Program-made: the position numbers and the translations under genes
NCBI GenBank assembly: GCA_002269645.1
Contig: NIVC01000104.1
Location: 186,001 to 250,000 of the forward strand
Source of the DNA: Macrostomum lignano
Lineage: Eukaryota
DNA length: 64,000 bases
Direction of reading: 5' to 3'
Shown: in pieces, positions 6,352 to 60,329 of the stretch
Position numbering within the stretch: position 1 is the first letter of the stretch
How the letters are laid out: each line of letters opens with the position of its first letter
Notes under the pieces: generated by a model
The model's input: the letters and a program-made list of their open reading frames with translations, nothing else
Told to the model about the DNA's origin: nothing
The model's database searches: none

Positions 6352-9300
6352 TTAGTATTTTACATCGGACAGATTCTCGTTGCTGTTAACGTAGGCCGAG
6401 TTGACCGCCCCGGGCTCGAACGGTCGTGAATAGGCGCCGGAGGACTTCAATTCGAATTGGCCGTCGCCATTGGCGTACTTGGACTCGTCCGTGTCCTCCC
6501 TCATCCAGGATGGTCGCAGGTAATAGACAAGAACGTTGACAAACAATAGCAGCAGCAGCAGCGCAACCCACTGCGAAAGAAAGAATAGTATGAATAGAAA
6601 GATGGCACATGAATTCAGTCAATTTTACTATTTCAGTAAATGACAGCGCCTAATACTACTTTTCTAGGTAGTTAGCATGCGACATCCTCCATTTAAACTC
6701 ACAAGATCAGTATAATGCTATAGAATGGAACTTGAGAATTTTACAGTTCTTTCTTAAAACCAAAGGATTGACTCGCTTCATAAGTCGTACCAACTAAAGT
6801 ACTAACTTAAGACGAAAAGCCATTTTCAAGGCGCTTTGAGTATGGCATCGTAGCAACTGACCTCAGTGATGACGGTGACAAAGGTCTCAACGCCGTAGTC
6901 GTACCAGCGATTGCCTGGTGCCTCATCTGCGGTGCTGCGGATCAGCTCCAGCGCCCACCAGGCCAACAGGCCCACCGCTTCGAGTGGAGCGATGACGCTG
7001 GAAACAAAATTATCGGAGAATAAATTGATTCATTCATCTGTAATCACTTTGTCAGCCTGTCAAACTAGGTTTTATAAAAATACGTCAAAATAATGTAGCT
7101 GAGTAAGCTTTTTAAACTATTAAGCTTTATAATCTACAAGTTTTACTAGGCGTAAAGGGGTTCGGTTTTTCGTGTTGACATCGCTTCATGGTCAGAGGTC
7201 GGTGACTTTTACCTCAAGGGCCAAATAAAGCCAGAATGAGAGAGGAAATGAGAAAGAATAGAAGATGAGAGAGGAGAGAGAACAGAAGAGACGAGAGATG
7301 GAATGAGAGAAAAAATATAAGAGAGGAGATGAGAAGGGGGGCCGTTGCCCAGCGGTCTAGCGCAGGCTCTGGTGTTGCCAGCGACCCAGGCTCGATTCCA
7401 AGTGCAGTTACATTAATTTGGGGCTGAATTGGAATCTCGGCTTGGCTCTGCTCGTGCAATTAACGGCCTTGAGGGCCAACCCCCAAGGCTCAGTGAAGTG
7501 TACATGCCTAACGATAAAATAAAGTTAGGGCCGCTGTACACTCCTGTGTGAGTGTGTGCCTGCGTACGTATCCTCGCGCTTGTATGCCTGCTCAGGGGAG
7601 TCGGCGGAATGGGCAGCAATGCCTCTCGCCGGTTGTGTTCCTATGTCGCTTAAAGTGCGCCAGGGTGCACACAACCCCCTGCCTCTAATAAAAAAGGATG
7701 AGAAGAGACAAGATGAGAGAGAGGAGAAAGGGGAGAAAAAAGAGGGTTAAGAGTAGATAGGAGAGAGAAGATGGAAGACGGGGAGAAGCGACACAAGCCT
7801 TGAGCTAGACAGATTGCCATTGTGTAGTTTGAAAGGACCCGAAGGCCGGATACAAGTATATGCCTGTCATTCACCAATGAACTAAGAAATCGATTACTCA
7901 AGTGGAAATTGTAGCGGCCAGCTTACACAATGATAATCATAGTAACGATCGTCAAACGCCAGTCCTTCTCGCCGTAGTCATTCACAACCTCTTGCTGGAA
8001 TTTTCTAACGCCGTACTTAATTACCAACAATTGGAACATGATTCCAGACAGCATTAGAGCGAAGCCCCACACAAAGTCCTGCAATTTCGTTGTACAAACG
8101 TTTCATATTAAAACTGTATTAATTAGACAATTAACTTCCAAATGCGGCGTACCTGGTTTCTTAGAATTTCAATCTCCATAGCCGACGGCAGACCAATTAA
8201 GAAGGTTGCAATGATCACAATCGGTGTGCCATACTTTCGTGGAACTGAAATTTAGAACGATGCAAATAAGAGGCAGGTAAAGTTCATTTTGCAACTCTTT
8301 GCTTAACAGAGTTGGCTCATGAACATATTGGGGATGCTCAGTCAGGTACACTCGTACATCCCCATACATTGCGTCATCTCCTACAACTGTAGAAAAACAC
8401 ATGATTTCACCACAAATAACCATAAAGAAATACGTGTAGGTTAATTAGTTCGCAGGGACATACTCTCCGCTGCAAAATCAAGCGACAGTCAAGCAGTCAT
8501 GGCCATTCCACTGACTCCAGAGTATGCAAACGGACGCAGATAAGTACACATACACGTCATGCATAGTATACAGCGGCCCTGACTTCTCATCGTCACGTCC
8601 ACAGGCTTGTACGAATGTTACTCTGAGCTTTGGCGGCTCATGCCTTCATGAGCAATAATTATTTTTTCAGTAGATAGCTTACTTCCAAAGTCCTGCAGAG
8701 TGAGCGACGTCAATTCGAAATTGGCGATCAACGAGCTAACGCCGGCAAAGCTGAGGCAGAGGAAGAACAAGACGCAGAGAATTTTTCCTAAGATGTCAAC
8801 CTGAGCAAATAGCACGGGAATCCAGATGAATGTGAGCCCAGTGGAAGCCGGTCCAGATTGCTTGATAATCTCCACGATGCCAGTGCGCGATAGAGTGCTC
8901 TGAGTCTGGATCAGAGTGGAGAACACTGTCGAGAAGATGGTCAGTGCGCACAGCATGCTGCGGAATGAAAATCGCCATGAGAGCTTTTTAAATTCGCTCA
9001 TTCTAACAAAAGTTATCTTTCTAAACTTAGAAAAAAACGATTGAAATTGTGTTACCTAACAAAGTTGTTCATGGCGGGAATCAGTGTCGAGAACCTCACG
9101 ACGCCATGCTTCCTAGTCATGTAGGTTGCGTAGGGAACGATAAGGCCCATAGCGGCTCCGGTGTCGAAGGCATTTTGGGAAGCCGAGTCCACCCAGAGCC
9201 GAGGGTCTTGCAGCGCTTCTGTAGGGAATTGATAACGGAAATCTAGCGTTGTTATTACGTCTTTGCGAACTGTGAATGAATTGCTGCATAATGAAACTTC

Positions 9301-12300
9301 TACAAGTTGTTTTGGCCGTCATGGATTGTTTAGTCCCTAGGTTAAATCCCACACGACAACCTAGTAGGAGCGCACAACTGAACTTACCTAAATCCGGAGT
9401 AAATAGGAACCTAATGCCATAGTCGCTATATTTGTTCAGAACCGACCAGCAATAGGTGCCAACAATGATGAGCAGCAGGGTAGGCACCAGCACCATGTTG
9501 GCCTTCTCAATCCAGGTGATGCCGCCGATTACGCAAGCGCCGGATGCGAGAATGGCCAGGCCGTGGCACATGATTGGCCAGTAGCTTTTCTCCTGGGAAT
9601 TGAGAAGTCAATCAGGCGACTAACGTTACCAACACGTTTTCTGAATTCAGAGTCTCAAATGCAAAGCAACTGCTCATTTAGGACTGGGAAACTGGGAGAC
9701 TCAATCCTTAAATTTCTTCAGGACTGGGAGCCTATGTTAATCTCTAGTCATCTCTATAGTCAGGAGAATTTTGTTCCGGGCAAGGAATCCCTAGCTGTTC
9801 AGGGCAGGGAATCCCTAGTAGTTCAGGGCAGGGAATCCCTAGTTGTTCAGGGCAGGGAATTCCTAGTTGTTCAGGGCAGGGAATCCCTAGTTGTTCAGGG
9901 CAGGGAATCCTTAGTTGTTTAGGGTAGGGAATCCCTAGTTGTTCAGGGCAGGGAATCCCTAGTTGGTCAGGGCAGGGAATCCCTAGTTGTTCAGGGCAGG
10001 GAATCCCTAGTTGTTCAGGGCAGGGAATCCCTAGTTGTTTAGGGCAGAGTGTCCTCGATCCAATGCATTTTCCAGATTCCTCAGGACTGGAAGCCTCAGA
10101 TCCCAGTTTCTTCAGAGTCAAAAGCAGTCAACTAGGGAATTTAAAAGAGAAACTCGGATCAAAGCCTTACAGCAAACGCTTCGAATATTTCCTGACTCTC
10201 TGGCTCGGCCTGCGGCAGCTCTCCGGTGGCGGACAGTTGAATCGTTTTGTACACATAGTAGAAACACCAGCCCAGCACGACCGAATAGTAGCAACTGAAA
10301 GTTTTTGGTTTAGGTAACTTTTTACTTTACAAGCTACTGATTTAATAAGTAGTATCGAAAACAAAATAGTGTTCGATAGTTGGCTGAAGAAAAAGAGTTC
10401 ACTTTGTCGCAAGCAGTCATCTTATCTATCTAAGCGCTTCGTGCCTTATCGACCGAACTTCTCTCCCAGAGACTGTATAAACAGGCGAGCACACAAAAAT
10501 CCTAAAAAAAAAGGAAACACCTGAGCACAAGCCTCGTTTAGCAAATCGGCATTATGGTTTTAATCTATAGAAAAGACCACCGCATTGCGATGGCGATTGT
10601 TACCTGCGCAATTCTGTGCCAATGTATGCCTGTTTTAAAGGCCGGAACGTGTAAGTTTCGTGTTGCTTCATTTTTTAAAGCTGGGCTCTCGGAATTTCTG
10701 GAAAAGCCTCTTTTTCGAAGATTGATGTCAGGATGACTTTTCAGTTATGAATTCACGATTTCTGTGGGTCTTGGCGTCATTTTGAGTGTTTTAACCCAAT
10801 TTGGTTGTCTTGACGCCACTTTGGGTGTCTTGACGTCACTTTGGGTGTCTTGACATTACTTTGGGTGTTTTGACGTCACTTTGGGTGTCTTGACGTCACT
10901 TTGGGTGTCTAGACGTCACTTTTGGTGCTTGACGTCACTTTGAGAGCCTTGACGCCTTTTTTGGTGTCTTGACGTCACTGTGGGTATCTTGGCGTCACTT
11001 TGAGAGCCTTGACGCCTTTTTTGGTGTCTTGACGTCACTGTGGGTATCTTGGCGTCACTTTGAGAGCCTTGACGCCTTTTTTGGGCGTCTTGACGCATCT
11101 AAGTTGTCTAGAATAGTGCACTATTTCGGATATCTGAACTCTATTTTTGATGCCTGGTGCTACTTTTGGTGTCTGCATGTGTGCCTTTTAGGTGCCAAGG
11201 CGAAAATTAGATTACAGGAGCGCCACTTTTCTATGAATTCAATTAATCAATTCCCAGGTGAGAATCGGTCTCCGGCCACGGACCCGTGCGACTGGGTGGC
11301 AACCTCTGGCAGCTGTGCAGAGTACTACCAGGTGTACGCTAAACTGTCCTACCAGTACATCAGCAGTCCCAGGTATCCCGACAGCTACCCAGAGTGAGTT
11401 TGATCAAGTCTTTAAATTTCCATTGAAAGTGTGATGTGTGGCTGATTTGATTGTTTAATTAAACTTTTAGCAGCGCCACCTGCCGCTGGGTGATTTCCTC
11501 ATGCAACTGCCAGGATACGGACCAGCAGGAGGGCTTGGAGTATCGGGTGGAACTCGAGATGCTGGACTACGAGATGCAGGAGAGTCCCTCGTGCACTAGG
11601 GACTTTGTTGAGGTTCGGGACGGTAAGTCTAAAGACAGTTCTGAGTTTGCGAAAATTAAACTTGGGCCTCCAATCCCTTCTTCCAGGTTGGTCAAACTGG
11701 CCGCCACCCCCTTCCCCCAGTTGGTTAAACTTGGGCCGCGACCCCCTTCCCCAGTTGGTTAAACTTGGGCCGCCAGCCCTTCCCCAGTTGGTTAAACTTG
11801 GGCCGCCAGCCCTTCCCCAGTTGGTTAAACTTGGGCCGCCAGCTCCTTCCCCCAGTTGGTTAAACTTGGGCCGCCACCCCCTCCCCCAGTTGGTTAAACT
11901 TGGGCCGCCAGCTCCTTCCCCCAGTTGGTTAAACTTGGGCCGCCACCCCCTCCCCCAGTTGGTTAAACTTGGGCCGCCAGCTTCCCCCAGTTGGTTAAAC
12001 TTGGGCCGCGACCCCCTCCCCCAGTTGGTTAAACTTGGGCCGCGACCCCCTCCCCCAGTTGGTTAAACTTGGGCCGCGACCCCCTCCCCCAGTTGGTTAA
12101 ACTTGGGCCGCCACCCCCTCCCCCAGTTGGTTAAACTTGGGCCGCGACGCCCTCCCCCAGTTGGTTAAACTTGGGCCGCGACCCCCTCCCCCAGTTGGTT
12201 AAACTTGGGCCGCGACCCCCTCCCCCAGTTGGTTAAACTTGGGCCGCCACCCCCTCCCCCAGTTGGTTAAACTTGGGCCGCCAGCTTCCCCCAGTTGGTT

Positions 12301-14684
12301 AAACTTGGGCCGCCAGCTTCCCCCAGTTGGTTAAACTTGGGCCGCCACCCCTCCCCCTGTTGATTAAACTTGGACCGCCACCCCCTCCCCCAGTAATTAA
12401 ACTTGGGCCGCCACCCCCTCCCCCAGTAGGTAAACTCGGACCGCGACCCCCCTCCCCCAATATGTTAAACTTGGACCGCCAACCCCTCCCCCAATATGTC
12501 AAACTTGAACCGCCACCCCATCCTTCCATGCCAGTTGCGTAAACTGAGCCACCACCATCTCCTCAATAGGCTAACCTTGAATTCTCACAATTCAAAAGAG
12601 ACCGCATCGGATCAATTGAAAAAGCGACACTCTCGCAGGCAAGCGCCAGTGGGACTACTCCCCGGCCCGTTACTGCGGCAGTCCCAGTTTCTGCTCGACA
12701 ACGCGTAGAAATCGAAGCGTCAGTTCGAAGCAGCACCTACTAGTTGCATTTCTAAGCGACGTTCCCAATCATAGTGGGAAAAATACTAATAGAGGATTCC
12801 TGATGCGATACAGATGCTTGGCCTACAGTGAGTTAAAAAAAGTTTAGTAAGATGCAAACTGCTCTACTGTAAGTAGGTAAAATAACGAAAAATCTCTTAA
12901 CAATTAACCTTTATCCTTGTATGATATTTCAGAGCCGGCCATCGAGGCTAATCTATCGATGGGGCCGATGAACTATGCATTGATATGCGTTAGCTGCCTG
13001 CTAGCGGTCGGGTTTGCCTCGGCTATCACCTTGTTGGCTATTAATGAGAGACGACGAGCCTAAGTGAAACGTACGGCTTATGACAGTTTGACTTGGCTGG
13101 GCAATGATAAATATGATTAGTTGTTAAATCTACTACAGAGGTCGGTGAAAAGGGCCAGCTGATTTTTACCTTAAGGGCCAGATAAAGAATCGGGGCTTCG
13201 GGTTCGGGCCAGATGAGAGAAGAAAGGTGAGACAATAGAAGATGACAGAGGAGAGGAGAGATGGAATGAAAGAAAAGATAAGAAAGAAGATGATGGGAAA
13301 GAAGATAAGAGAGGAGAGAGAGAAGAAGTAAGAGAATAGATGGGAGAGAAGAGAGAAGGGGGAAGAGGGGAGAGGGGAGATGGGGGGTTTACTTTTTTAT
13401 CTACATGTATCTCTGACCTCTGTCCTTAAATATTTTTATCCCTCTCGCTGCGAATAAACTACTGATAGTAGAAAGAACTTTAACTGTATGCAATTATTGT
13501 ATTTTCATTGTACGCCTATCGTAAAATTGTTAAATTTTGAGAATCAGACTCGAGAAAAAACGCATATCACTGGCATAGCACTATTTTGTAAGTCCAAGAG
13601 GTTTCGAGTTTCAATAACTTTTCCAACGATGTTGATGCGATGGGAAAATTGATCATAATTAAGCTGGCGTTGGTTCGAGTATAGCAGAATTTCCTCATTT
13701 TTTGCTACTTTGAAAATCAACCTGAATCTGCTGCGACTGCAGACTGGCCTGATCAATTTGTGTAAGAAACCTGTCGATCTCACCTAATCAGAAACGTCAC
13801 CGAAGTGACCCAGGCGCCGCACCACACAAACTTGTCGCCCATCGCCTTCCTAAACGATTGGATCGGCGACTTTTTGAAGTAGCGCCCGATGGCGTACTCG
13901 ATTAGAAGCATCGGCGACGACCACAGGAACAGAAAAACAAACCACGTGACCAGAAAAATCAGGGTGCCTGTGGGTTGAGGTTCGAATGCGTCGTTACGCA
14001 GCTCTTAATAGCGGTATTTAGTAAATATTATGGCATCCCCTAGACCTGCAGTGTGATTAATCTTCTTTTGCTAGCCATTTGATACCTACATGTAGCCACT
14101 AAAGGTCTTACAAAAGTCAACACATAAATATATATATAACTGCGCATTTGTGGAACTAAAACTACATGCTTGACGGGAACAGCGTTTAACGTATAACGAA
14201 AAAAAGTTTGGGTAACTAAAAGTGAAAACTTTAGTTGTCGATTAGGGCATAGTTTAAGGGATAACGCAAAATTTTCTATTACGCTACTGTGAGTAGTTTT
14301 AGTTGCGGAAATGTCAGTAGATGGGTTAGTAAATCAGTATCCCCAGACCACGGGAGACACGATTACGATCGGTAGAAACTTCAGTAGCAAATATGACGGA
14401 TTGCCTAGATTGACTCACCCTGAGAGGCGCTGTTCTGCGCGGCGATTCTAGGAAATCGCCAAATATTTCCGGTGCCAACGACGGTGCCGAGACAGGAGAA
14501 AACGATAGCAGCTGACGAGCTAAACGCCTGTGGCGGCTTCGGCTCTTCAATATCGTCCGTGTCATGTTGCTGTTCGGACAAAAGAATGCAGCAAAATTTA
14601 TAGAACAAGTTTTCTTTTTTGAACATTAAGAATTTGTTAAACTTTGATGCTCACCCTGTTTCCAGCGTATTCCACCTCAGTCAT
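6352..14684 (-). CDS. SLC6/NSS (SNF-family) sodium:solute symporter; 11 exons, 576 aa
   Basis: Exons (minus) 14655-14684, 14419-14569, 13784-13967, 10171-10294, 9388-9592, 9056-9218, 8683-8957, 8153-8244, 7927-8078, 6862-6997, 6352-6570. All are GT-AG with consistent phases and sum to 1731 nt. Motifs: TM1 LGTVVGTGNIWRFP, TM2 LLIEYAIGR, TM3 CYYSVVLGW, TM6 WVDSASQNAFDTG, TM8 FAGVSSLIA. Confidence 0.92.
7193..7795 (+). mobile_element. hAT/Charlie-like MITE remnant with GA-rich interior, interrupted by a SINE
   Basis: Begins CAGAGGTCGGTGACTTTTACCTCAAGGGCC, matching the ends of the elements at 13136 and 38429 (reverse). Purine-rich filler lies on both sides of the SINE. The right TIR and TSD were not found. 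Confidence 0.5.
7338..7690 (+). mobile_element. tRNA-derived SINE, family B, copy 1
   Basis: A-box-like TTGCCCAGCGGTCTAGCGC and B-box-like GGCTCGATTCC. The body is shared in reverse orientation with 36165-36420. Confidence 0.65.
9770..10045. repeat. 24-bp minisatellite (CAGGGCAGGGAATCCCTAGTTGTT)n in SLC6 intron 4
   Basis: About 11 near-perfect units. Explains the CPEQLGIP and QGRESLVV ORF-track repeats. Confidence 0.95.
10554..13063 (+). CDS. Single-CUB-domain type I membrane protein, nested antisense in SLC6 intron 3; 5 exons, 234 aa
   Basis: Exons 10554-10650 (signal peptide MAIVTCAILCQCMPVLKAG), 11258-11393, 11471-11622, 12639-12827, 12933-13063, phase-consistent, 705 nt. CUB motifs: ISSPRYPDSY, CRWVI, CTRDFVEVRDG, RYCG, LLVAFLSD, RGFLMRY. 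C-terminal TM YALICVSCLLAVGFASAITLLAI followed by NERRRA*. Confidence 0.85.
10790..11100. repeat. 20-bp minisatellite (TTGACGTCACTTTGGGTGTC) with a 60-bp higher-order unit
   Basis: Visible tandem units. The last three 60-nt lines are near identical. Confidence 0.9.
11660..12530. repeat. ~33-35-bp C-rich minisatellite (CCCAGTTGGTTAAACTTGGGCCGC...) in CUB-gene intron 3
   Basis: About 25 units with a variable C-run spacer. Confidence 0.95.
13136..13422 (+). mobile_element. hAT/Charlie-like MITE with GA-rich interior
   Basis: Ends CAGAGGTCGGTGA... and ...TCTCTGACCTCTG are inverted. Same family as 7193 and 37739. The TSD does not match. Confidence 0.55.
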
Positions 14685-18692: not shown

Positions 18693-21600
18693 TCAGATCA
18701 TGAAAGGCACAGGTCCACTGTAGGCTAACGCAATGGCAAACGACACCTTGCGCCTTTGACGAAATTCTTCTTTTCGCAACGAGTTCTCGGGCACTCGAAG
18801 CACCCAGCAGTCAAGTTCTTCGCAGACCACTCGATCGGTGTCGTTCAGGTAGCCAGTGAATGTTCTATAGCGAGTCTCGTTCAGGATGTACTTTTGTTGC
18901 TCTTCGAACGAGCGTCGTCTCGGTAGGTAAATCAAAGCTTTCAAGTTATCACCTGTGCCGAGAACAAGTCGGGGCACGTTTCGTCCAGGAAACGTCTTGG
19001 AGCTTCCCTGATGGCACGGATCGTCCCGTTTCGTCAGGCGATCGCACCTTTCCATCAGCTGCTTGGCCTCCTGCAGATGTTCTTTTCGCTTTGGATCCGT
19101 TGGCTTCCGAGAGAGCGCAGAGGCCAGATAGAACGCTCCGTGTATGAAGTTGGCAATGACGTCAGTAGTGAACTTCGTTCGCCAATCGGCAGCAAGTTGA
19201 ATGCCCCGTTCTAGCACGTCCTTTGTAGGTCGAGACAAGATAGTTAGCACACAAGCTTCCAAGTAAGTACGCGACAGCTTCGATTTGCACTGCAGCAAAA
19301 TCTCTAAAAGTGACTCAGAGTCCTTCGCATTCACTCCTTTTAGTCGCCAGACGCGATCCCACATAAGTCGCGCCAGCAGCTTGTTATCATCGGACTCATA
19401 AATATCCCATAGAGCCGAATCCTTAGATGCCTTCTTGCTCTGGGTGTACACATCCACAATCGTCCACGCATAGGCATTGTCCTTGATGTCTGTTCGAAGC
19501 TTCACGCTGCTTGCATTGATGGCCGATTGAGAGAAGCGATAGCGGCTGATAAATTCTTCTTTTGCATCATTTAGTTTTCCCATATCCTTTTCGGTTAGCG
19601 TTTCCGAGTCCACTTCGCCTTCTTCATGCATCTTCTCCAGGTTTAAAACATTCTCAATTATTTTCTGATGTGCTTCTCTAGCAACACAGAAGCAGTCGTT
19701 TTCAATCTCCTGAAAGTAAATTTCGCTGTCAGAGTGACACTCAGTTTCGAAGAAACGATTTAGCAGTATGCGCTGCGCCTGAATTTCGTAAACAAACGGG
19801 TGCGCTTTGTAAACGAAATCTCCAGTTGACTTTGCGGGAACTCTTTTTTGAATCTTCTTGCACAGGCGAATACTTTCGACAGCCCACGCCTGAGCCTCTT
19901 GAAAAGATATCTCTGGACCGGAGCTCACGCGACAGTTAATGAGGTGAGCGGATAAACCAAGGACTACATCATCAGTGCAAGTTGTGTCCGAGAAGAATGT
20001 CGCATCTTCAGTTATGTCCAATGCCTTACGGACAAAAACGATAGATTTTGTATGATCCTTCTGGTGGTATGCAACATAGCGAGCAAAGTGGACCAGCGTG
20101 TGAGACTTTGTTTCTGGAAAAGCATTTGCTAGTCTCGTGAATATGCGCTCAATTTCTTCCAATGGAAGGTTCTCGTGAAGAGTCATGAAGAAGTCAGTTA
20201 ACTTAGGATGTTTTGTCCTTTTCTGGCAAGAAATCAACCTTCGTACCAGGTAGGTCAAGCAGGAAAGCAGAGAGTCGGGTCCTTCTTCACCCATTTTGCA
20301 CAGACTGCTCACAAACATTCTGACTTGTTCTCCTTCTCGCTCGATAGGACTGATATCTTCAAAAAGATATTCAAGAATTTTCTCGCCGACAATCGATATT
20401 GGGGCCAACCCCCATCCTTTCCGCATTCTTTTCACAGTTAATAGATAACGCTGTTCTTCCAAGTGTTCCAACACCTGTAAAGGATCCTTCTGTTCTGGAG
20501 GAAGGTCCAGAAATTTGGCGGCTATCGATAAGTTCAAAGATGAGTGCGTGAAGTACTTCGTCAGGCAGGCAAAGCGCAGAAGAGAATTCTTTTTGTTTTC
20601 ACAATCCTCTAGAAGAGACTGAATAAAAACGTTAATCTTCACATAATCCTTTCTAAAGTGCCAGACGCCGAAAAGGAACGGTGTTCGATCAGTTTCCTTT
20701 TCGACTTTGTCCGTCAACTTGCGATTCTCATCGCCTCCGGATTCCATGTAGATTTTTGTGAATGCATTTGCCTCGTCTGGGCTAAGTTTTGCCGTCAAAA
20801 CTGGAATCTCAAAGTAGCACCGTTTCCTGTTAGTTTCTTTATTGGACTGAACTTGCTCCACGCAAACGGCAACAAATCTTGGCGCAGAAACGCGCCTGTT
20901 CAACTCTGACGCAAACGCATGAACAGATGAGTGTGGGAATTCCTTAGAGTCGAACAGCACTAGGACAGGTAGCTCTGTCTTCTTGTGCAGGGTACAAATA
21001 CCTTCAGACACTTCCTGCATTCGATCGAAGCACTTCACTTCAATGCAAGGGTACTCTTTACGAAGACGCCAAAGCACGATTTTGGCGATCGTTGACGCAC
21101 CAGATACTGCCTCGTGGGGTAAGCGAATGATCTGCCTGACGTTGGTGTCCCAGTTTGTGAAAGAACGGTTGCCGCAATGGCTAAGAGATTTGCTCACTTT
21201 TTCTTTCTGCGTCTCAACTTGTCTTCGCTCAACATATATTCCACTGTTTTGGTATCGTAGCTCATCATGCAGATGGAGCATCTCCTTTGTGAGTTCGTTT
21301 CCAGCTAAGAACTGACGGCGAACTTGATTAGTGTACTGTTCCTTCTGATCGAGGGCCTTGCTGAGGTACTTGGACTGACCAGACTGGATGTGGTAAAGCC
21401 GGAGGTACGGTTTAAACGTCGCGAACTGCTCGCGAGCCAAAGATATTTGGCCGTGCTTTCCAGGCAGCTCGTATTGTTTCAGTGCAACCATTGAAGGATA
21501 AATAGACTCAAATAGATGGCATAACTGATTCACAGGAACGAGAATCAAGTGTTCTTGCAGACTTTGATTCTTATAGACTTTCCTTAGCTGATCGCTTAGG

Positions 21601-23819
21601 CCGGATAGCACTTGCTGCTGAACGTACATGGTATACGCTTTAAAGGCATCTGCATTGTTAGACTCGGACAAGAATGCCTCTCTTAGATGGCACTCAGCGT
21701 CTGTGGGACTCATTGGTAAATTTTCAATTTCCAAAAATGAGGTGCAGAGGCATAGAGACGTACACAACACTGGTCTAGGACGCTGGTTCTTCTCAAATAT
21801 GGCATTTAGCAAGTAGGTTCTCAGCAGCTTCTTGAGCTTGTGTTCATTAGTCGGTCCTGCTTTGCCTGTCTCGCTGCATCCCATCACTTGAACGTAAATT
21901 GTTCGATGACCGCTTTGGCACTCTTCAATGTCGTGGGTCTGCAGAGTGGAAAGGTCCTCCCACGACTTTACCGTGCTCAGTCGACCTAACTTGCGCATTT
22001 CTTCTTCCATAAAGGTGAAGATGCCTCCTTCCTTGCGGCTATCCCTATCGAAATCCAAAACTACGTCCCATGTGCCTCGACCAAGCGACTTTGCAAGAGT
22101 TTCACGCTCTCTAGCGTTCTTTGCTGCAGAAAACTTTGTGATTATCAAGACTCGGAATGCGTTTTTGGCTTGAATAATGTCTTCTTTCGCCCAGTACAGC
22201 TGGCTTACGTCACATTTTGATTCAAATTGAGAATAGACCAAGTTTCTAAAGTCGTTATCCCAGTTACACTCTTGCACGTTCTGTGCATCGCTTCTTGCAT
22301 ACAACAGTCGCTTTGATTGTTTTTCGGATTTGCTTTTTCGAGAAGCGTCGGCAGTCGACTTCGCACGGCAGTCCCTGAACACAGCCGGACCGGACTCACC
22401 TCTAGGGATCTCTAGCATGCCGTAGCTACCTGCTGGAATAGTGAGTCCCATGTTCTTCAGACAAAGCTCAGAATCAAAACGGATTAGGTGAAAATAACAT
22501 TTCACAAATGGAGTGGTATTGTTTCGAAAACAATCCTGGATCTCTTCCTCGCCCGGGTACTTTGAAAGAGGAGCAAATTCGTGCTTCTTGTCACCAGTCT
22601 TTCTATCAAGCTCCTTCACGCCATAAACAATGTAGGAGCTGAAACAGGACTTGTCAGTCAAGCTGGGCTCCCTCAGGTCCGGGTGAAGTCCGTTGTACAT
22701 GGAACAGGCGGTCTTGAGCATACGGAACTTCCAGTCATTAGACTCGTTCACGGATGTTTTGAAATCGACGTGGGTCGACTCCTTGATATTCTTGCATAGC
22801 AAGTACACAAAAAACTTTTGGTCCCGTGAAAGCTCGTGAAATGCCTTCTCGCTTCGAAGCGGTGGATCTGTAGTTTGAGTTTGAAAAAACGTTTGTCCAG
22901 AATAGTTGAACTATTCATTCATTAATTCAACACAAAAAACTTACGCTTTTTTAACATGACGCTATCAAAATTGTCAGTGTTGATGTTGTTGTCCTCTGCA
23001 TCTGAATTCTCCAGCTGATCCAGCAGCTCGAAACCTATTATTTTTATTTAAAGATTCTATAAATCAGCGCCTGTCTTTTATATCGGAAAACCCTGACACT
23101 GTAGCTCGTATCGTCACTTACGGTTCGTAGAGTTAAGCGAAGGCGTCGTGTGTTTTTCCGTGTGCTGTGCTGGATAGTCTTCAATTTCGTCAGTGGCAGG
23201 TTTCACCAGCAAGAGTCCACTTTGGCCATCTCTCTGTTGGCTTGATGTACTTGTACTTAAATCCCTGTCAGAAGAGGGATTCTGATTTTCACTTTTTGAA
23301 CCCAGAAAGCTCGACGTTCCGGAGACGTTCCTACGGAGCTCATGGCTTTCCACATTGGTGTTGCTCTCCGTTGTAGTCTGCTTGTCGGCGTCAAGTTGAC
23401 TGATGTCACTTTGGTTTGGCTGCTAGAAAAAGCACTGGTTATTTAGGCTGGTTAAGAAGCGCATCTAAGATTAGATATGGTGATTTGACGATAACTTACC
23501 GGTGTTGCTTTGTTCTTGTTTTTTTTCTTTCTCTTGCGTTTTTTGCTTGAAGCATCGGCAGACTGCGGAGGAGGGAGAGGTAAGAGTTGGAGTCATTTGT
23601 ACTGTTGACTCGTAGTTTCCGTATTACTCTGTATTACATTTCGTCTGATTCATCTGATTCACCTCTAAAAAGGTTGAAATCGTAAACAATGTCTACGGGT
23701 TTTATACTCACCGGCGTTAAATTTGGACTATGCCAGCAGAACCATACCAGCACAAGTACGCCAACTAATATTGCAATGGCGATTGTTAATGGATTAACCG
23801 ATTGCAAGTATGGGTGCAT
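18693..23819 (-). CDS. SAMD9: SAMD9/SAMD9L-like protein (AlbA_2, SIR2-like, STAND NTPase, helical repeats, OB) with predicted N-terminal TM anchor; 5 exons, 1578 aa
   Basis: Exons (minus) 23712-23819, 23500-23562, 23122-23422, 22945-23034, 18693-22867, phase-consistent. Family motifs: ESTHVDFK...YIVYGVKE (AlbA_2), WDVVLDFD, IIRLPHEAVSGASTIAKIVLWRLRKEYPC (cf. SAMD9 [29 protein letters not shown]), LPVLVLFD, and C-terminal KVSFAIALAYSGPVPFMI*. The symbol denotes family, not orthology. The four 5' exons are less certain than the large exon. Confidence 0.85.
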
Positions 23820-25649
23820 TGCTTCCTGAGGATGAGGATGGGAGAGCAAAATAAAAATCAAACTAGAAAAGAACCAGACTGAATCTCTAGGCTGGAGCAA
23901 AAACAACTCTATATAGTAACGTCTGATTGTTTTCTCCAGCTTATTGTCAAAGAATACGTTTGCCACAGAGGTCTAGAGGTCTGAACTCGCGTCTGGGCAT
24001 GACTAATATGTAATATCTATCCTCTTCTGCCTCACCGCCACCCCAAGTCAAGCTGGAGCCTGGAATCGTTCCTTCTTTTCTCTTTCCCACTTTGGTCCCC
24101 AATGTACAATTACGCTGCACAATGTGCACAGACTTTTGATGAAGGCCTTTCGTACTAGCTATTTTAAGCATCGCGTGCATTGGTACGCCCTCTCTCCTCC
24201 CTTGCCTCCATCCCTCTGCGCATTAAAAGGGCAAATATCGAAACCGAAAACTGTCTGTCTACTATACAGATGGCCTCAAGATATCTAAGAGTAGTTGCTA
24301 TAGATTGTGCTATCCACGGCTTTTTTGGGAGACGCTAATTCCATCCATTCGGTTTGGAAGACTGAACGACTAAAATAACAACTGTTAGCTAGCTATCTCT
24401 ACTAAACGAAAAACATTAATCTGATCTAAAGTTTGATGCACATTTCACGGAGTAGTTTCAACACTATTGACTCAAAAAATGAACAAGAAATGCTTACTCA
24501 AGGAGTTATCGCGTGTAAGTCAGCAGGCTTCAACCCCCGGCCTGACAACTATATATCATGCTGAAGCAGTTGACCAATAGCAACTCGCTTGTAACTTCAT
24601 CGTCTTTTGTGCTCAACTGTGCACTAGCACACTGTTTGAGAGAATAATATAAGCGTGCAGCTTACGTGTGTATGCGCCTAACCCTTGAGCCTCAGGTCTC
24701 GCAGCTTACTTCTTTGGGAAAAAAATCGAATTCACAGCTGACGGTGTAATTGAGATTAAAACTACCGCTTGAATTTACAGGCTTACGCATGGCTGCAAGC
24801 TGAGAAATTGCCATGTATAGATTGTACTTTATTTTGTGGCATTACGAGCGTAGATACACCACACGGGAGAAGAATGGACGTCGTGTAAATATTAATCCAT
24901 ATTGAGTACGATTGCTCCTTGGCTCCCTGGTAGTTTGATACTCGTATGCCTGAAGGGTTTCCAATGGCAGCAGGAGGTCCACTCCAAATGGGATTTTTAA
25001 AGACGAAAATCTACGAGTTGAGAAATCTACAGTATTACAATTTTATTGTAAATTGTGCCCTCCTAATGCAACAATACAGAATATGAATATTTTATATCAC
25101 TAAAACAAGAAGAATTATATTTTAATAATCGTTACGTTCAGCAACAGTACAGTGAAAATTACTTTATGAAAAATATTTTATTGCTGCTACTATGAGTAGA
25201 CAAAAAGAAACGCACGGACATTTGTAACAATAAAAAATGGTAAAATTCTCTACTATAAGCATTTTTTAGAGTTAGCTATGATGTAGCATATTAACCAGAA
25301 GCACGAAAAGTACCAGAACTCGTAAAAATTGAATGAACGTTGAAAAATATCATAGCTATGAGGTGTACACCGATGGGACAACTCTAAGCATGTAAATTCG
25401 AGTAGATACGGAGCTTTAAGTATTGTAGTTTTGTTCCTTTTGTTAATATTGAATTAAATCAAATTTACTTAAAAGAAAACTGTGCATCAAACCATCAAGG
25501 CGCATGTCTTTTGGATCTTTTCAATGTGTTGTATTTAAAACAAAACAGTTGAAAAAATGTTGTTTTAACTGCAGCTCTTTGAGCGTACATGTACTTGAAG
25601 TTTCAATTCGAATTCTTTAACATCAAGTTGTGCACTTCGTAACAGCCAG

Positions 25650-30017
<4,368 letters not shown>

Positions 30018-30882: not shown

Positions 30883-33800
30883 CTAAACAGCGTCGCCCTC
30901 GCCCTCGCCTTCTTCTTCGTAATCGTCTTCGCCCTCGTTATCGTCTTCGCCCTCTGGCGGCTCCTCAATGAGATCTTCTTCGTCGGTAGTTTTCTTTGCC
31001 AGCGGGACGAACAGCCTGTCAAAGTCAATCTTGCCCACCTGTGGCGGCTCGCTCAGGCTCTTCTTGCCATCCTGCTCAGTTGGTTTTTTCTTCTCTGTCT
31101 TTGACAGTTTCGCCTGCCTAAGTCTGCGCCGCTGTAGAGAGCTCACGCCAGTCAGGTGATCGACCACTGGGTGAGGAACAAAGACGCCCATACGAAAAAA
31201 GTCTTCGCTCTCCCCTAAAATTTCGCCTTGAAGATCATCCTCATCATCGCTTTCTTCTTCGTCGTTGTCGGCATCGTCGGCGTAAGAAGCGTCGTTGCCC
31301 CCCGTTTTCCGTCCACGCTTGAGTTTCTCAATCCTGTCCTGCCGACGATGGGCCTCCAGCTCGGCGTGCCGGATCATCAACTCGTCGCAGACCTGATCGA
31401 CTGCGTAGGCAAGCTTACCGGCCTGGTTGACCGACTCGAGCTTCCAGTCTTGAAAGTTGAAGCCCAGCGCGATTAGCAAACCGAGACAGTAGACAAATAG
31501 GAATGTTCCGATAAAGACTGCAGCGGATCGAATGTATAAACTAGCCGGCAACGGGTCGTGCAAGCTGCGCACGAAAATTGGAAACGATTCGTTCTCGAAG
31601 CACCGGGCTGGTTGGCAGCGACGGTGCTGGCGTCGGAATCCTTCGCAGAATCGGCCGTCTGAGTCGGCAGACTGGCAAGGTCGCTGGCGAAACTGGCCGC
31701 CGATGTTGCCGCAGGCCGGGAAGCAGTCGCTCCACTCGGACCAGTCAGACAGCGTTGAAAATATCTCGCGGCAGTCTTGCCCGGCGTAGCCTTCGTCGCA
31801 TTTGCACTCGACATCGCGCTCGCGGCCAACGCAGACGCCGTTGCCGCAGACTTTGCTCTGGCATTTTCTTGCCGCGAGTTTTGCCGCGGCGCCTCTGCCT
31901 TTGCCGCGACTGCCTCGACAATTGGGGAAGTTGGACACGGTTTTGTTTTCGAAGTAGGGCATGAAGCACGTGCACATGTAGGTGTCGCCGTCCGTCGTGC
32001 ACTTGTTGCCAATGTCGGCCTGTTGAGTTGAGATTAGGAGACTTAGTAGCCTAACAATCTGATAAATTATTTACAAAGCGTTTATTGGAAAAAAATGCAA
32101 CAGACATAACCACGTAAAAATGCAGGAAAAGTCTGACCTATTATTCACTGGTGCACTCTAACCTAATGAAACATGCAAGTCGTTCTGAAGAGCTTGTACG
32201 GCAAACTACCTAGGTTACGTTAGGCTTAGTCTTTTGAGCTTTATTTAGCCATGCTTCTGTTAAGTACTTATCCTAAGATCCTAAGACCTAAAAAGTAGAT
32301 CCTCGGAACACTAGAAGTTACGCTTGTATTCGGATGTAACACTTGAGTACCATGGACAATTCATTAGAAGGCCTAAATTTCATTTAAACGGGCACTTGAA
32401 ACGCGATAGAAACTTAGCACTCAATTGTCAATAATCTCACATTTTGGGCTTTCAAATGCATATAAAATTGGTATGCGTTTGTTTAGAGCTTGATCCATGA
32501 GGCAAAAATTCGTCCATTCAGTGCCTAAAAATGTAGATTTTCTATCTCTCTATCTAATACATGGTTTAGCGAGATAGGACTTTCAAAAAAACTTCCTCAG
32601 AAAGCGAGTGTTGTGTCCGAACGCAACCGTAACTTCATTTTGATCTTTTCATAGATCTCCGGCTAATTTAGCCAATTACCTGACAAAGATCGCGCCCAGT
32701 CTCTGCACTGTGCGGCGTCACTCGTTCCGTGCACCTGTCGGCAATATTGAAACACTTAGACACCGGATCGAAGCCGTGATAGCAGTTGCACATCACATTG
32801 GCCGATTCGTTATTCTTAGATACAACGGTGCACGTTCTTGTCGTCTCTAATTTGCAATCGATGCAACCAGGCGGCCAATAGACTTCTATTCTGCTATGCT
32901 CCCGGCAGGACTCCATCACTATCGTTGATAGGTGACTAAATCCTTTGTCCAGCAATGGAACGAATGGCTCAAAGTTGGCCAGTCGCGTTATAACCCGGTG
33001 CACCGCTGGCCGCCCGTTGCACACGCACATTGGCACCAAGTAGCCTTGCGGCACGTTCTTCACTGTCCAGCCGTTTTTAATGTAACGAGGCACCGAGCTC
33101 TGTGGGCGAAGAGTTTTTTAATTGACAATTCAGTTCATACTGTCTACAGATAAAGCGACACTTAAAAAACCCGGACTTCTTGAAGATTAGTCCAGTGAAA
33201 GAGTGACGTCTTGGTAGAATTATAAATCTGTGGTTGTTGGGATCTTTGATGGTGTTGATTTTAAGTTTGGGAAATATTTTTCTGTAGCTTTAATCTATCT
33301 CCATGTACATGTAGCTTAGAACCAACAACGGATACAGGCCGGGAATTGGAATTTGGGTTTTTGGTGGGGAGAATTATTAAACAGGGGGGGGGAGAATGTA
33401 AACTCTCTAGGACCAACTGACCCGGAAAAAGACTCTGCATGCTCTACCATATCGCCATAACCTTCACCTTCAAGACACTCCTATAGCACAAAGATAGATC
33501 TCACGTGACCGCTCCGCACGCCCCAGGCAAAGGTGCCATTGTCGCCTTGGCAGAGTCCATTGAATATTTGATAGGCCACCCGTGGCAAATCGATGTTGCT
33601 CACAGCCAACTTCGACGAGAGTCGATTTGAGTCCTGCACCAGGTCAATACTGGGCACTGCCGGCAGATCGCTTTCTTGGCTCTTGTTGAGAACTAAAGTG
33701 TCTTTCGTAGAGTCATAATACCCGGAGACTCCGTACTTGGTCCGGTAGATGCGCAGCTGCTCGTACAGCATGAACTTGCCAAAAGTGACCTCTTTGTAAG

Positions 33801-35536: not shown

Positions 35537-48014
<12,478 letters not shown>

Positions 48015-55960: not shown

Positions 55961-56149
55961 CAGACTCGTATTCACATAATTTCCCTGTTATCTCTGACCA
56001 AAACTTTCCATTTCTAACAGATAACGAATTCTTACCGTCCATTTCCAATCTACATTCTGCCAGCGGATCTTTTAACAGCACAGACCAATTATACTGAGCC
56101 TAATTTAGCAAAAACCCTCTCGATAGCTGACTCACACCTCCCTATTCTT

Positions 56150-59100: not shown

Positions 59101-59209
59101 TATAAAGAATATAAAGAACTACGCTCGTATGCCCCTAACAGATGTACTCGGAAAACTGTTTTTGCTCGCTTGCTACTTTTCAACTAGCTACAGCTCGCAA
59201 GCCGCTTCA
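56150..59209 (+). mobile_element. Degenerate Ty3/gypsy (Mag-like) LTR retrotransposon
   Basis: 100-bp direct repeats 56157-56256 and 59110-59209 (4 mismatches) end in CA, with PBS-like TTGGTGAG after the first. Gag *LPTFW..P..CFIQAEAQF..RGIT; RT SPWSSPLHMVPK and YIDDFLVAS; RNase H DASD...YSAFDRELLA...FTDYKPL; integrase HGLAHP...CVACQ and QRPYDGPFKVL. Many stops and frameshifts. Confidence 0.92.
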
Positions 59210-60329
59210 GTATTGCCAAACTTGACACTTTTACCCATGCAGTATACTAGAAGTAGTGAAGTCCGCATATTTAAGTCCTCATTCACCTAAAGCGCGACAT
59301 GGCGTCTTTTATCATCCACACTTTCAATAGAACTAGAAAGCATTGCCTTCATACAGTCTGGAGGGTCGAACTTAGGGGATGACGCAACCACTACCACCCC
59401 ATTGCTTGGAGAGAGTGAGATTGTACAGCCCGCGAGCCTCTGAAGCATCGCGTCAGTTTTAGTATATTGAGAGATGTACATCTGGAAGTACAAATAGAAA
59501 TTACCACGCTACTTGCATATTTCTTGTCAGTAGTATAGTGACAGTGTCTGTATATGTGTCAGTATAATTTGTTTTTTTGCGAAAAAACATCTAAAAACCA
59601 AGCTCTAAAAATCGCCCTAAGTATTAATAGTGCTGGTGGTGCAGACCTCATACCGGCCCCCACCTGCTGAAGATAGGGGCAGGCGTGAAGCGATCGCAGA
59701 CCGTAGCCCATAGACCTGTCCTGTCTCATACTTCACTGGTGGGCTGAATACGCCTTCGCTAGCGTCTTTCTTTCTCTCTCTCTCTCTGTTTGTCTATCAG
59801 TCTACAAATTTGCAGAGTAAATAAAAAAGATTAATCAAACTAACTTTTTACTCTTCTTCTCAACACCTCGATACCTTATATGACCAGCTGAGTCAATAAC
59901 CTAGCTGAGTGCTCAGTAGGCAATTGCCATGGCAACCGAATTGGCCAACTGTCACAGATACAGCCTCTTGCCAATGCATCGAATCCCTCAAAGCCTCTCA
60001 GCAATCCCAAGTAAGCGCTAAATGAAAATTCGCATTTTACCTATCGGCAGGCGGGGCTGTCCCAGGCTCTCAGAAAAAGCCAATTAAGTTAAAAGTAATT
60101 ATCTGTATACAACTTCTGTTTTAGCATGTGTTGAGGGGTGAAACTGAGTTTTCCCCACCACAGAGGCATCACCATAAAAGTCAGGGGTCTCTTTGAGAAG
60201 ATTAGTCTTGGGCTTGGCCGAAAAAATTCTAACTCTGAATTAATGGTACCCATCAAACAGCTTAGTTGCTAGGATTACTTCGGAAAGAGTCGCTTTTTAA
60301 GAAAAATATTTCAGATATTGTAAATCAAA

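Follow-up and report, generated by a model that had tools for sequence, protein, structure and literature searches.

The 64,000-nt stretch of DNA analyzed here (the window) carries, on its minus strand, a gene for a SAMD9-family STAND NTPase of Macrostomum lignano. Our favored reading, which we hold with moderate confidence, is that this one paralogue has gained exons for an N-terminal signal-anchor. The locus is BOX15_Mlig002174g2, already public in GenBank under the label hypothetical protein, and a literature search for this identifier returned no paper. No second copy of the gene is present in the 64,000-nt window.

The window sequence gives a five-exon model with phase-consistent junctions and GT..AG at all introns, resulting in a 1578-aa ORF (Table 1). 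The four junctions and the small 5' exons proposed in the initial annotation are in frame and coincide with the GenBank model after the exon-3 acceptor is moved from 23422 to 23419, these being the two sites of a tandem TAG|CAG acceptor. Use of 23419 leaves one Gln fewer, and the translation of the window is then identical to that of BOX15_Mlig002174g2 (P0001, 1577 aa). The peptides read earlier from the spliced 5' part are also present as described: exon 1 encodes MHPYLQSVNP, the hydrophobic segment LTIAIAILVGVLVLVWFCW and HSPNLTP, and the basic-cluster peptide SKKRKRKKKNKNK and a Ser/Thr-rich linker are found further on. The M. lignano annotation combines RNA-seq-guided StringTie/TACO transcripts with TransDecoder ORFs (PMC5730564), and the junctions of BOX15_Mlig002174g2 are therefore transcript-derived.

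Table 1. Features of the BOX15_Mlig002174g2 locus, in window coordinates.
Feature	Position	Strand	Details
Pyrimidine-rich tract ending CAG	23826..23850	-	6 nt 5' of ATG; read from sequence
Exon 1, coding	23712..23819	-	36 codons; ATG 23819-23817, A at -3; donor GTGAGT; start of GenBank P0001
Predicted transmembrane/signal-anchor segment, LTIAIAILVGVLVLVWFCW	23733..23789	-	residues 11-29; hydrophobicity and flank charge
Exon 2	23500..23562	-	21 codons; basic cluster KKRKRKKKNKNK, residues 43-54, 23509-23544
Exon 3	23122..23422	-	disordered-looking S/T/N/Q/D/E-rich linker; tandem TAG/CAG acceptor
Exon 4	22945..23034	-	acidic segment; holds Met183, the next in-frame ATG
Exon 5	18693..22867	-	~1390 codons and stop 18693-18695; SAMD9-like body
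AlbA_2-like region	22362..22781	-	residues 216-355 of P0001; Pfam PF04326, 23.5 bits, E=8.4e-5, cut-off 25.3
NTPase and following helical region homologous to human SAMD9	19773..21326	-	residues ~701-1218; profile against PDB
Walker A-like motif, HEAVSGASTIAK	21081-21116	-	aligned to human SAMD9
Walker B-like motif, LPVLVLFDS	20946-20972	-	aligned to human SAMD9

A family search returned 265 matches at E<1e-3 among 1.84 billion representatives. We built a profile from the 14 nearest relatives and compared it with the PDB, and this analysis revealed a match to human SAMD9 chains (37ib, 9zjw, 9zjr etc.) at E=4.5e-28 over ~515 profile positions. Because the profile reaches the solved human SAMD9, membership of BOX15_Mlig002174g2 in the SAMD9-family STAND NTPases, as initially annotated, can on sequence grounds be considered solid. 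The Walker motifs match, and the motif IIRLPHEAVSGASTIAKIVLWRLRKEYPC aligns with the corresponding stretch of human SAMD9. The similarity to SAMD9 was seen only through the 14-sequence profile; a single-sequence phmmer search of the PDB with the main-exon protein gave no match at E<=1. The alignment extends beyond the NTPase into the helical region, up to profile position 1087 of 1421, and the last ~330 positions have no significant match. Pfam TPR, OB and NACHT models have no match in P0001. As judged from its sequence, the NTPase is a member of the SAMD9/nSTAND5 clade and not of NACHT.

The AlbA_2 assignment made earlier is weak: the region matches PF04326, but with a score below the Pfam threshold, and the best match to this family among the close relatives scanned has an E-value of 2.2e-5. 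A profile of the AlbA_2 region identified no relative in the PDB, its sole match being a spurious one to SPC24 (E=0.09). AlphaFold2 models of the first 400 residues of exon 5 are of low confidence, with a pLDDT of 34 using no alignment, and a pLDDT of 47 and a pTM of 0.42 using a 4-sequence alignment. Foldseek retrieved nothing at E<=0.001 with the latter model; its top match, 2kyy (E=0.07, probability 0.66), may be taken only as a hint. The stretch between the AlbA_2-like region and the NTPase, where the SAMD9 family has a SIR2-like domain, is conserved among close relatives.

The absence of a SAM domain was confirmed both in the protein and in the three minus-strand frames of the 2.9 kb upstream. 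This 2.9 kb interval reaches from the ATG to the next gene on the minus strand and contains no exon for SAM, DEATH or any other domain. Only vertebrate SAMD9s have SAM; N-termini vary elsewhere, and SAM is not a defining feature of the family at large (PMC5445408). A SAM-encoding first exon was rejected, since SAM is vertebrate-specific within the SAMD9 family.

The anchor had been proposed to stand in place of SAM, and this claim is not borne out: SAM occurs in vertebrates only, and M. lignano has paralogues without any N-terminal module. Three of them, BOX15_Mlig021180g1 (P0002), Mlig007074g1 (P0156) and Mlig000249g2 (P0007), are 36-43% identical to BOX15_Mlig002174g2 over the AlbA_2-like region and the NTPase body, and share with it an acidic N-terminal exon. 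They have no counterpart of exons 1-3, and thus no transmembrane segment, basic cluster or long linker, and they begin 30-50 residues ahead of the AlbA_2-like region. Because these paralogues have no N-terminal module, the anchor would be an addition and not a replacement. The first coding exon of substantial size in P0002 is the homologue of exon 4, and the next intron is of phase 1 in both genes and lies within one residue in the alignment. This common phase and position indicates that exon 4 is ancestral and that exons 1-3 were added. The three extra 5' coding exons thus appear to be a lineage-specific gain in one gene. No exon encoding a transmembrane segment was found within 5 kb upstream at the paralogue locus, where the DNA has no similarity to the 5' region.

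Residues 11-29 form a segment of 19 residues with a summed value of about -3.6 kcal/mol for membrane insertion on the Hessa scale (Hessa et al. 2005) and a mean Kyte-Doolittle hydrophobicity of 2.71. As a chance sample we used the stop-free fragments of at least 36 aa from all six frames of the window (n=924), and 19-mers as hydrophobic as this one occur in only two of them (0.2%). A survey of 153 other homologues revealed no comparable N-terminal segment, none of them scoring below +2.96 kcal/mol (next best ~+3.0). In this sample the segment is confined to one gene and missing from the M. lignano paralogues (P0002/P0155/P0006 and P0156/P0007). By these measures the hydrophobic segment is a real feature of the gene, but a single, unconserved case. 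The flanking charge is 0 on the N side; on the C side it is +1 over the nearest 15 residues, so that the asymmetry is weak close to the helix, and rises to +9 over 25, which agrees with the initial description of a hydrophobic stretch followed by positive charges. The basic cluster, KKRKRKKK, begins 14 residues past the helix. Given flanks of 0 and +9, the positive-inside rule favors an uncleaved anchor with a cytosolic enzyme body, that is, a predicted signal-anchor with N-out, C-cytosolic topology.

The extra exons encode, in order, an uncharged N-tail of 10 residues, a very hydrophobic helix of 19 residues and a polybasic cluster (net +9). A net-acidic linker of ~130 residues follows, rich in Ser, Thr, Asn and Gln, the final ~30 residues of which come from the ancestral exon 4. 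From this arrangement we infer membrane insertion, topology, choice of membrane and nuclease activity as follows. The helix would serve as an N-terminal signal-anchor that is not cleaved off and leaves the N-terminus on the lumenal or exoplasmic side, and the basic cluster would set the orientation and might also bind acidic lipids. The flexible linker would then allow the ~1400-residue body, comprising an AlbA_2-like putative nuclease module, an NTPase switch and a C-terminal sensor region, to operate at the cytosolic face of an endomembrane, most likely the ER because the helix is highly hydrophobic. Activation may proceed as in SAMD9/SAMD9L and Avs, from ligand sensing to NTP-dependent opening or oligomerization, and the output may be RNA cleavage leading to translational shut-off, here restricted to the membrane surface. 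A fuller proposal, possible and put forward only tentatively, is a SAMD9-type sensor/anticodon nuclease that a permanent tether keeps on the cytosolic face of the ER or of some other endomembrane, where membrane-bound translation or viral replication organelles would be under its surveillance; optional proteolytic release would then let KKRKRKKK redirect it.

It is rather unlikely, on balance, that the product is mostly soluble like its paralogues and that the transmembrane exon extends the 5' end only as a young, minor or alternative addition. Such a product could start at Met183, in exon 4, or at the AUG of a spliced leader joined by trans-splicing to exon 2, whose acceptor is of phase 0; this second route would give M-SADASSKKRKRKKK..., with a TM-less, NLS-like N-terminus. 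The spliced leader of M. lignano has ATG at its end (PMC8629364) and 30-39% of genes are trans-spliced (PMC8629364, PMC5730564). A soluble product would also resemble the paralogues, all of which begin with an acidic N-terminal stretch that corresponds to exon 4, and would fit with the anchor being conserved in no other homologue examined. Exon 1 by itself carries no significant coding signal, as its 36 codons are too short for significant openness or codon usage. On the other hand, exons 2-3 comprise 121 codons that are open in frame without an ATG, and so require an upstream start. Exon 1 is supported by these open exons, by supplying the sole in-frame ATG before Met183, and by the deposited transcript-based model, which splices it to exon 2; moreover, hydrophobicity of this degree is expected in only ~0.2% of chance 36-codon ORFs.

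We consider it improbable that exons 1-3 are an annotation artefact, either 5'UTR or stretches of a chimeric or read-through transcript, from which TransDecoder chose the longest ORF, so that the hydrophobic peptide is never made. The ORFs of the annotation pipeline were indeed chosen computationally, and the GenBank record of the gene gives no UTRs, its gene span being equal to the CDS span. In addition, the tract just upstream of the ATG is a good acceptor-like site, which makes the 5' end of the model provisional. This tract could be a putative cis- or SL trans-splice acceptor, an exon from 23825 being in phase 0, and it fits only in part the trans-splice acceptor motif of M. lignano, YTNCAG (PMC8629364). 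The open frame of the 5' exons argues against an artefact. The spliced 5' part (562 nt) has no stop in frame 0, versus 6 and 14 in the other frames, and the composition-based probability of its ~186-187 stop-free codons is 4e-5. Its codon-usage score is best in frame 0 (+12, versus -44 and -60), and the four introns have stops in every frame and a lower GC content. Exon 2 is open in all three frames, so that its own openness is not diagnostic. The ATG of exon 1, with its A at -3, is the first in frame past an upstream stop, and the 5' region of the gene is unique, not a repeat.

The anchor could also be real but serve a regulated release, proteolysis freeing KKRKRKKK to act as an NLS in the manner of membrane-tethered transcription factors, or it could target the protein to the mitochondrial outer membrane instead of the ER; we regard both variants as improbable. 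The basic cluster does resemble a classical monopartite NLS at a short distance from the helix. Nothing tested points to a protease site or a nuclear function, however, and SAMD9 family effectors are described as acting on cytoplasmic tRNA and translation. An N-terminal anchor with a basic C-flank also signals outer-membrane proteins such as Tom20. Against this option, the helix seems far more hydrophobic than typical outer-membrane anchors. Finally, a cleavable signal peptide with a secreted or lumenal protein is very improbable and was rejected: although an AxA-like motif (A-D-A, residues 38-40) follows the N-terminal hydrophobic stretch, it lies 11 residues past a core that is 19 residues long and has no basic n-region, the charge of +9 on the C flank works against moving the C-terminal side across the membrane, and a 1500-residue NTP-dependent STAND with a nucleic-acid-directed effector would make no sense in the lumen.

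Both SAMD9 and SAMD9L are considered restriction factors of the cytoplasm, and the determinants of their site of action are an open question. If the fuller proposal of a permanently tethered sensor holds, BOX15_Mlig002174g2 would be the first case of membrane anchoring in the SAMD9/Avs9 clade, and would have arrived independently at the membrane-bound type of STAND sensor known from NACHT NLRs. A natural membrane-anchored member would show that the AlbA_2-STAND module is able to function at a membrane surface. It would also bring a localization module into the set of swappable N-termini of the family, which include SAM and DEATH-superfamily domains (PMC5445408) as well as the HEPN and kinase-like modules seen here, and would make a testable case available in a flatworm amenable to transgenesis. 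The weight of the case is limited by its being one unconserved gene with soluble-looking paralogues, and by membrane-bound STANDs being already known in the NACHT clade.

The M. lignano protein has several features in common with human SAMD9/SAMD9L: a homologous STAND NTPase and helical region, with conserved deviant Walker A (GG/AS-T-T/I) and Walker B (hhhhD) motifs, a candidate AlbA_2-like module N-terminal to the NTPase (weak Pfam match), and a size of ~1400-1600 aa. It differs from them by the lack of SAM, as expected outside vertebrates (PMC5445408), by the addition of a hydrophobic anchor, a polybasic cluster and a long disordered linker, and by an identity too low for a single-sequence match. 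Its closest relatives beyond the M. lignano proteins named above (P0010, P0011, P0013, P0015 etc.) share the STAND core (E 1e-28 to 1e-38), but have an N-terminal HEPN_DZIP3 (HEPN RNase-type) in place of AlbA_2 and no transmembrane segment. The HEPN N-termini of P0010, P0011, P0013 and P0015 illustrate N-terminal module swapping in the SAMD9-like family. The bacterial SAMD9-like STANDs (Avs9/Avs5/Avs6; Pfam nSTAND_NTPase5; P0026, P0082, P0132 etc.) are of the same NTPase clade and likewise SAM-less (PMC12680541); they carry N-terminal kinase-like/TCAD9 or GT4-conflict modules, and the sampled members have no transmembrane segment.

The architecture had been thought undescribed, and this stands for the SAMD9 clade, in which our literature search found no membrane-bound member; the word "transmembrane" is absent from two papers on SAMD9 evolution (PMC5445408, PMC12680541). 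It does not stand more widely, as the gene model is public and N-terminally membrane-bound NACHT NLRs are published, namely those of anthozoans (3-4 TM helices) and AjNLRC4/AjNLR-new of sea cucumber (PMC3879445, PMC13133943). Sponge AqNLRs have weak N-terminal TM calls (PMC3879445, PMC13133943), and the domain types listed for defence STANDs of prokaryotes and for related defence proteins include TM (PMC13581612). The invertebrate membrane-bound NACHT NLRs are alike in being STAND-type innate-immune NTPases tethered via N-terminal TM helices. They belong to another STAND clade, have LRR/Ig sensors and are usually multi-pass or equipped with extracellular domains, whereas the M. lignano protein has a single predicted N-terminal anchor and no ectodomain.

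Microsomal cytochrome P450 has a short uncharged N-tail, a hydrophobic helix of ~20 residues, a basic halt-transfer sequence, a flexible hinge and a large cytosolic catalytic domain. The M. lignano protein shows the same order of N-tail, helix, basic cluster, hinge and body, and the P450 anchor may thus be viewed as a mechanistic analogue with no sequence relationship. Compared with P450, the basic cluster of the M. lignano protein starts 14 residues after the helix, and its linker is far longer.

The full-length translation proposed in the initial annotation is 100% identical to BOX15_Mlig002174g2 of the flatworm Macrostomum lignano (P0001, 1577 aa, NCBI protein), a public entry annotated as a hypothetical protein only. 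The gene is located on NIVC01000104.1 (GCA_002269645.1) and spans 5127 bp, at window positions 23819..18693. As first read, its five exons join in frame to give 1578 codons and a stop, with phase-consistent junctions and GT..AG at all introns. The sole discrepancy with GenBank is one glutamine at the exon 3 acceptor, a tandem TAG/CAG (NAGNAG) at 23419-23424 of the minus strand where GenBank takes the downstream AG. With exon 3 starting at 23419, the window translation equals P0001 across all 1577 residues, one Gln fewer than the first model. This is the better call, because CAG is the enriched cis-acceptor motif in M. lignano (PMC8629364), and isoforms from either AG are plausible. The public M. 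lignano annotation is not ab initio: RNA-seq was mapped to the genome (StringTie and TACO), a de novo transcriptome was merged in, and ORFs were called with TransDecoder (PMC5730564). The splice junctions of BOX15_Mlig002174g2 are thus transcript-derived.

Exons of BOX15_Mlig002174g2 and other features of the window
Feature	Position	Strand	Details
Exon 1	23819-23712	minus	36 codons
Exon 2	23562-23500	minus	open in all frames
Exon 3	23422-23122 (initial annotation) or 23419-23122 (GenBank)	minus	tandem acceptor
Exon 4	23034-22945	minus	
Exon 5 (main exon)	22867-18693	minus	
Srw-type / rhodopsin-family 7TM GPCR-matching ORF	3985-4728	plus	E=1.8e-25
Sodium:neurotransmitter symporter gene (PF00209 SNF)	about 8700-14684	minus	public contig gene calls; ~4 kb downstream of BOX15_Mlig002174g2, same strand
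34-bp repeat satellite	11656-12523		26 copies
ORF with weak SH2-domain match	26644-27270	minus	E=0.0036, under Pfam cut-off; probably last exon of next upstream same-strand gene
24-bp tandem repeat	27953-28866		38 copies, 93% matches; yields long spurious ORFs (305-366 aa) in several frames, both strands
(TCTA)n satellite	29363-29634		68 copies
EGF-like and thrombospondin type-1 exon	30886-31977	minus	TSP_1, E=1e-6; then hydrophobic stretch and acidic tail
Degenerate telomere-like 18-bp repeat TTTAGGTTTGGGTTATGG	42246-42510		~15 copies
(ATAG)n satellite	44838-45789		237 copies
GC-rich block	56000-62000		GC 0.57-0.63; many overlapping ORFs
Reverse-transcriptase fragment	56817-57677	plus	RVT_1, E=3e-15; probably a retroelement
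47-bp repeat	60408-61073		14 copies

A HMMER search of 1.84 billion cluster representatives revealed 265 relatives at E<1e-3. A profile built from the 14 nearest of these (alignment A1) matches solved structures of human SAMD9 over ~515 positions (E=4.5e-28). In the profile alignment, the deviant Walker A region IIRLPHEAVSGASTIAKIVLWRLRKEYPC is clearly homologous to its SAMD9 counterpart, and the Walker B strand reads PVLVLFDS in P0001 versus PVLLLVDD in SAMD9. Bacterial relatives at greater distance match Pfam nSTAND_NTPase5, with kinase-like/TCAD9 or GT4-conflict domains at their N-termini, in keeping with the published family description (PMC5445408). Together, the profile match, the motifs and the bacterial relatives make membership of the SAMD9-family STAND clade well supported, as originally proposed. 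Assignment of an AlbA_2 domain is weaker. Pfam SLFN_AlbA_2 matches P0001 with 23.5 bits (E=8.4e-5), just under the 25.3-bit cut-off, and the close relatives scanned give an E-value of 2.2e-5 at best. A profile of the AlbA_2-like region found no solved relative, AlphaFold attempts on this region gave pLDDT values of 34 and 47 (both low confidence), and Foldseek with the low-confidence model returned nothing significant. Its top match (E=0.07, probability 0.66), 2kyy, is an AlbA_2-type domain from the N-terminus of a RecG-related helicase and provides a hint at most.

The SAM domain is restricted to vertebrate SAMD9s; the N-terminus varies in the rest of the family, being CARD, Death, Pyrin or FIIND in other animals and a kinase in bacteria (PMC5445408). 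The lack of SAM in a flatworm SAMD9-like protein is expected and unremarkable. No Pfam domain was detected in any of the three frames of the minus strand over the 2.9 kb that separate the ATG from the weak SH2-like ORF of the next gene upstream. SAM is absent as first noted, but exons 1-3 are better regarded as an addition to this gene than as its replacement. HEPN_DZIP3 is found at the N-terminus, in place of AlbA_2, in 7 of the 14 closest relatives; P0010, P0011, P0013, P0015 and others, the closest homologues outside the named M. lignano proteins, harbor it with E-values of ~1e-28 to 1e-33. The pattern resembles an exchange of effectors inside a single STAND clade. At least two more groups of paralogues exist in M. 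lignano, Mlig021180 (P0002/P0155/P0006) and Mlig007074/Mlig000249 (P0156/P0007), which are 39-43% and 36% identical to P0001, respectively. Their full-length models have a short acidic start 30-50 residues ahead of the AlbA_2-like region and no hydrophobic segment. The acidic stretch of P0002 lies in an exon followed by a phase-1 intron, at most one residue from the position of intron 22945/22867. This correspondence indicates that exon 4 is ancestral and that exons 1-3, which encode the predicted anchor, the basic cluster and the greater part of the linker, were added in BOX15_Mlig002174g2 only. No TM-encoding exon was found within 5 kb upstream of P0002, and DNA similar to the 5' region was found neither in the rest of the window nor at the P0002 locus.

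Since neither exon 2 nor exon 3 has an ATG, an upstream start is needed. The ATG at 23819, preceded by an A at -3, is the first one in frame following an upstream stop. A pyrimidine tract with a terminal CAG lies at 23850-23826, 6 nt 5' of this ATG; it could serve as a cis or trans acceptor, and an exon beginning at 23825 would be phase 0. The M. lignano spliced leader, CGGTCTCTTACTGCGAAGACTCAATTTATTGCATG, terminates in AUG (PMC8629364). Its trans-splicing to the phase-0 acceptor of exon 2 (23562) would give an in-frame TM-less form, M-SADASSKKRKRKKK, with an NLS-like N-terminus. A mostly soluble product, made from such a spliced-leader AUG or from Met183 in exon 4, is in our view rather unlikely. 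Frame 0 is free of stops throughout the spliced 562 nt 5' of the main exon, whereas the other two frames contain 6 and 14. In this part, codon-usage log-odds with the main exon as training set are +12 bits for frame 0 versus -44 and -60; exon 1 alone is non-significant by openness and by codon usage. Each of the four introns has stops in all three frames, and GC content is 0.29-0.40 in introns versus 0.40-0.49 in exons. Since 186 stop-free codons have a probability of ~4e-5, as computed from base composition, an ORF-calling artefact (a 5'UTR or a chimeric transcript) is improbable.

On the Hessa biological hydrophobicity scale (2005 values), the total for residues 11-29 of P0001, LTIAIAILVGVLVLVWFCW (window 23789-23733), is ~-3.6 kcal/mol; their mean Kyte-Doolittle value is 2.71. 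In a scan of 154 proteins (P0001 and its homologues), P0001 is the sole outlier, with the runner-up 19-mer at +2.96. Among the 924 stop-free fragments with 36 or more residues in the six frames of the 64-kb window, only 2 have a segment this hydrophobic; the other one starts at 30898 on the plus strand, opposite the EGF-like/TSP_1 ORF. The 10-residue N-flank has no charged residue, and the net charge of the C-flank is +1 within 15 residues and reaches +9 within 25 because of KKRKRKKKNKNK. The initially described hydrophobic segment and positive charges are thus present, whereas the uncleaved state and the cytosolic body are predictions. By the positive-inside rule, the N-terminus would be outside and the body cytosolic. 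After the basic cluster come 132-133 residues (60% S/T/N/Q/D/E, net charge -12) typical of a disordered linker. A product that is tethered then released, or inserted in the mitochondrial outer membrane, is doubtful. The 19-residue core, the lack of a basic n-region and the distant small-x-small motif (the nearest, ADA at residues 38-40, is 11 residues beyond the core) argue for an uncleaved anchor and make a cleaved signal peptide very improbable.

The reading we favour, which we give a roughly even chance, is that P0001 acts as a membrane-tethered sensor/effector of the SAMD9 family: an uncleaved N-terminal anchor would hold it, and a long flexible linker would carry the entire enzymatic body in the cytosol. 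Membrane insertion, topology, organelle and nuclease activity are all predicted here from sequence features. The high hydrophobicity of the helix would favour SRP-dependent ER insertion, and the basic cluster may set the orientation, interact with acidic lipids, or do both. Sensing and output would be as elsewhere in the family, where NTP-dependent activation of an N-terminal effector directed at nucleic acids is the paradigm.

No paper found in a literature search mentions the gene identifier, and the SAMD9 evolution papers PMC5445408 and PMC12680541 make no mention of transmembrane segments. None of the 153 homologues has such a segment, and within the SAMD9 clade P0001 is apparently the first protein with a predicted membrane anchor, a claim that concerns one unconserved gene. 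The gene offers a neat lead that can be tested in an animal amenable to transgenesis, and does not change the understanding of the family. The architecture, initially considered undescribed, appears new to this clade, but the idea of a membrane-bound STAND immune sensor is established for NACHT-clade NLRs. In anthozoan NLRs the N-terminus has 3-4 TM helices, in sponge AqNLRs it gives weak TM signals (PMC3879445), membrane localisation was shown experimentally for TM-containing NLRs of sea cucumber (PMC13133943), and TM is among the domain types listed for prokaryotic defence STANDs and related defence proteins (PMC13581612). The layout predicted for P0001 is also that of microsomal P450-type anchors, in which a short uncharged tail, a hydrophobic helix, basic residues and a hinge precede a large cytosolic domain.
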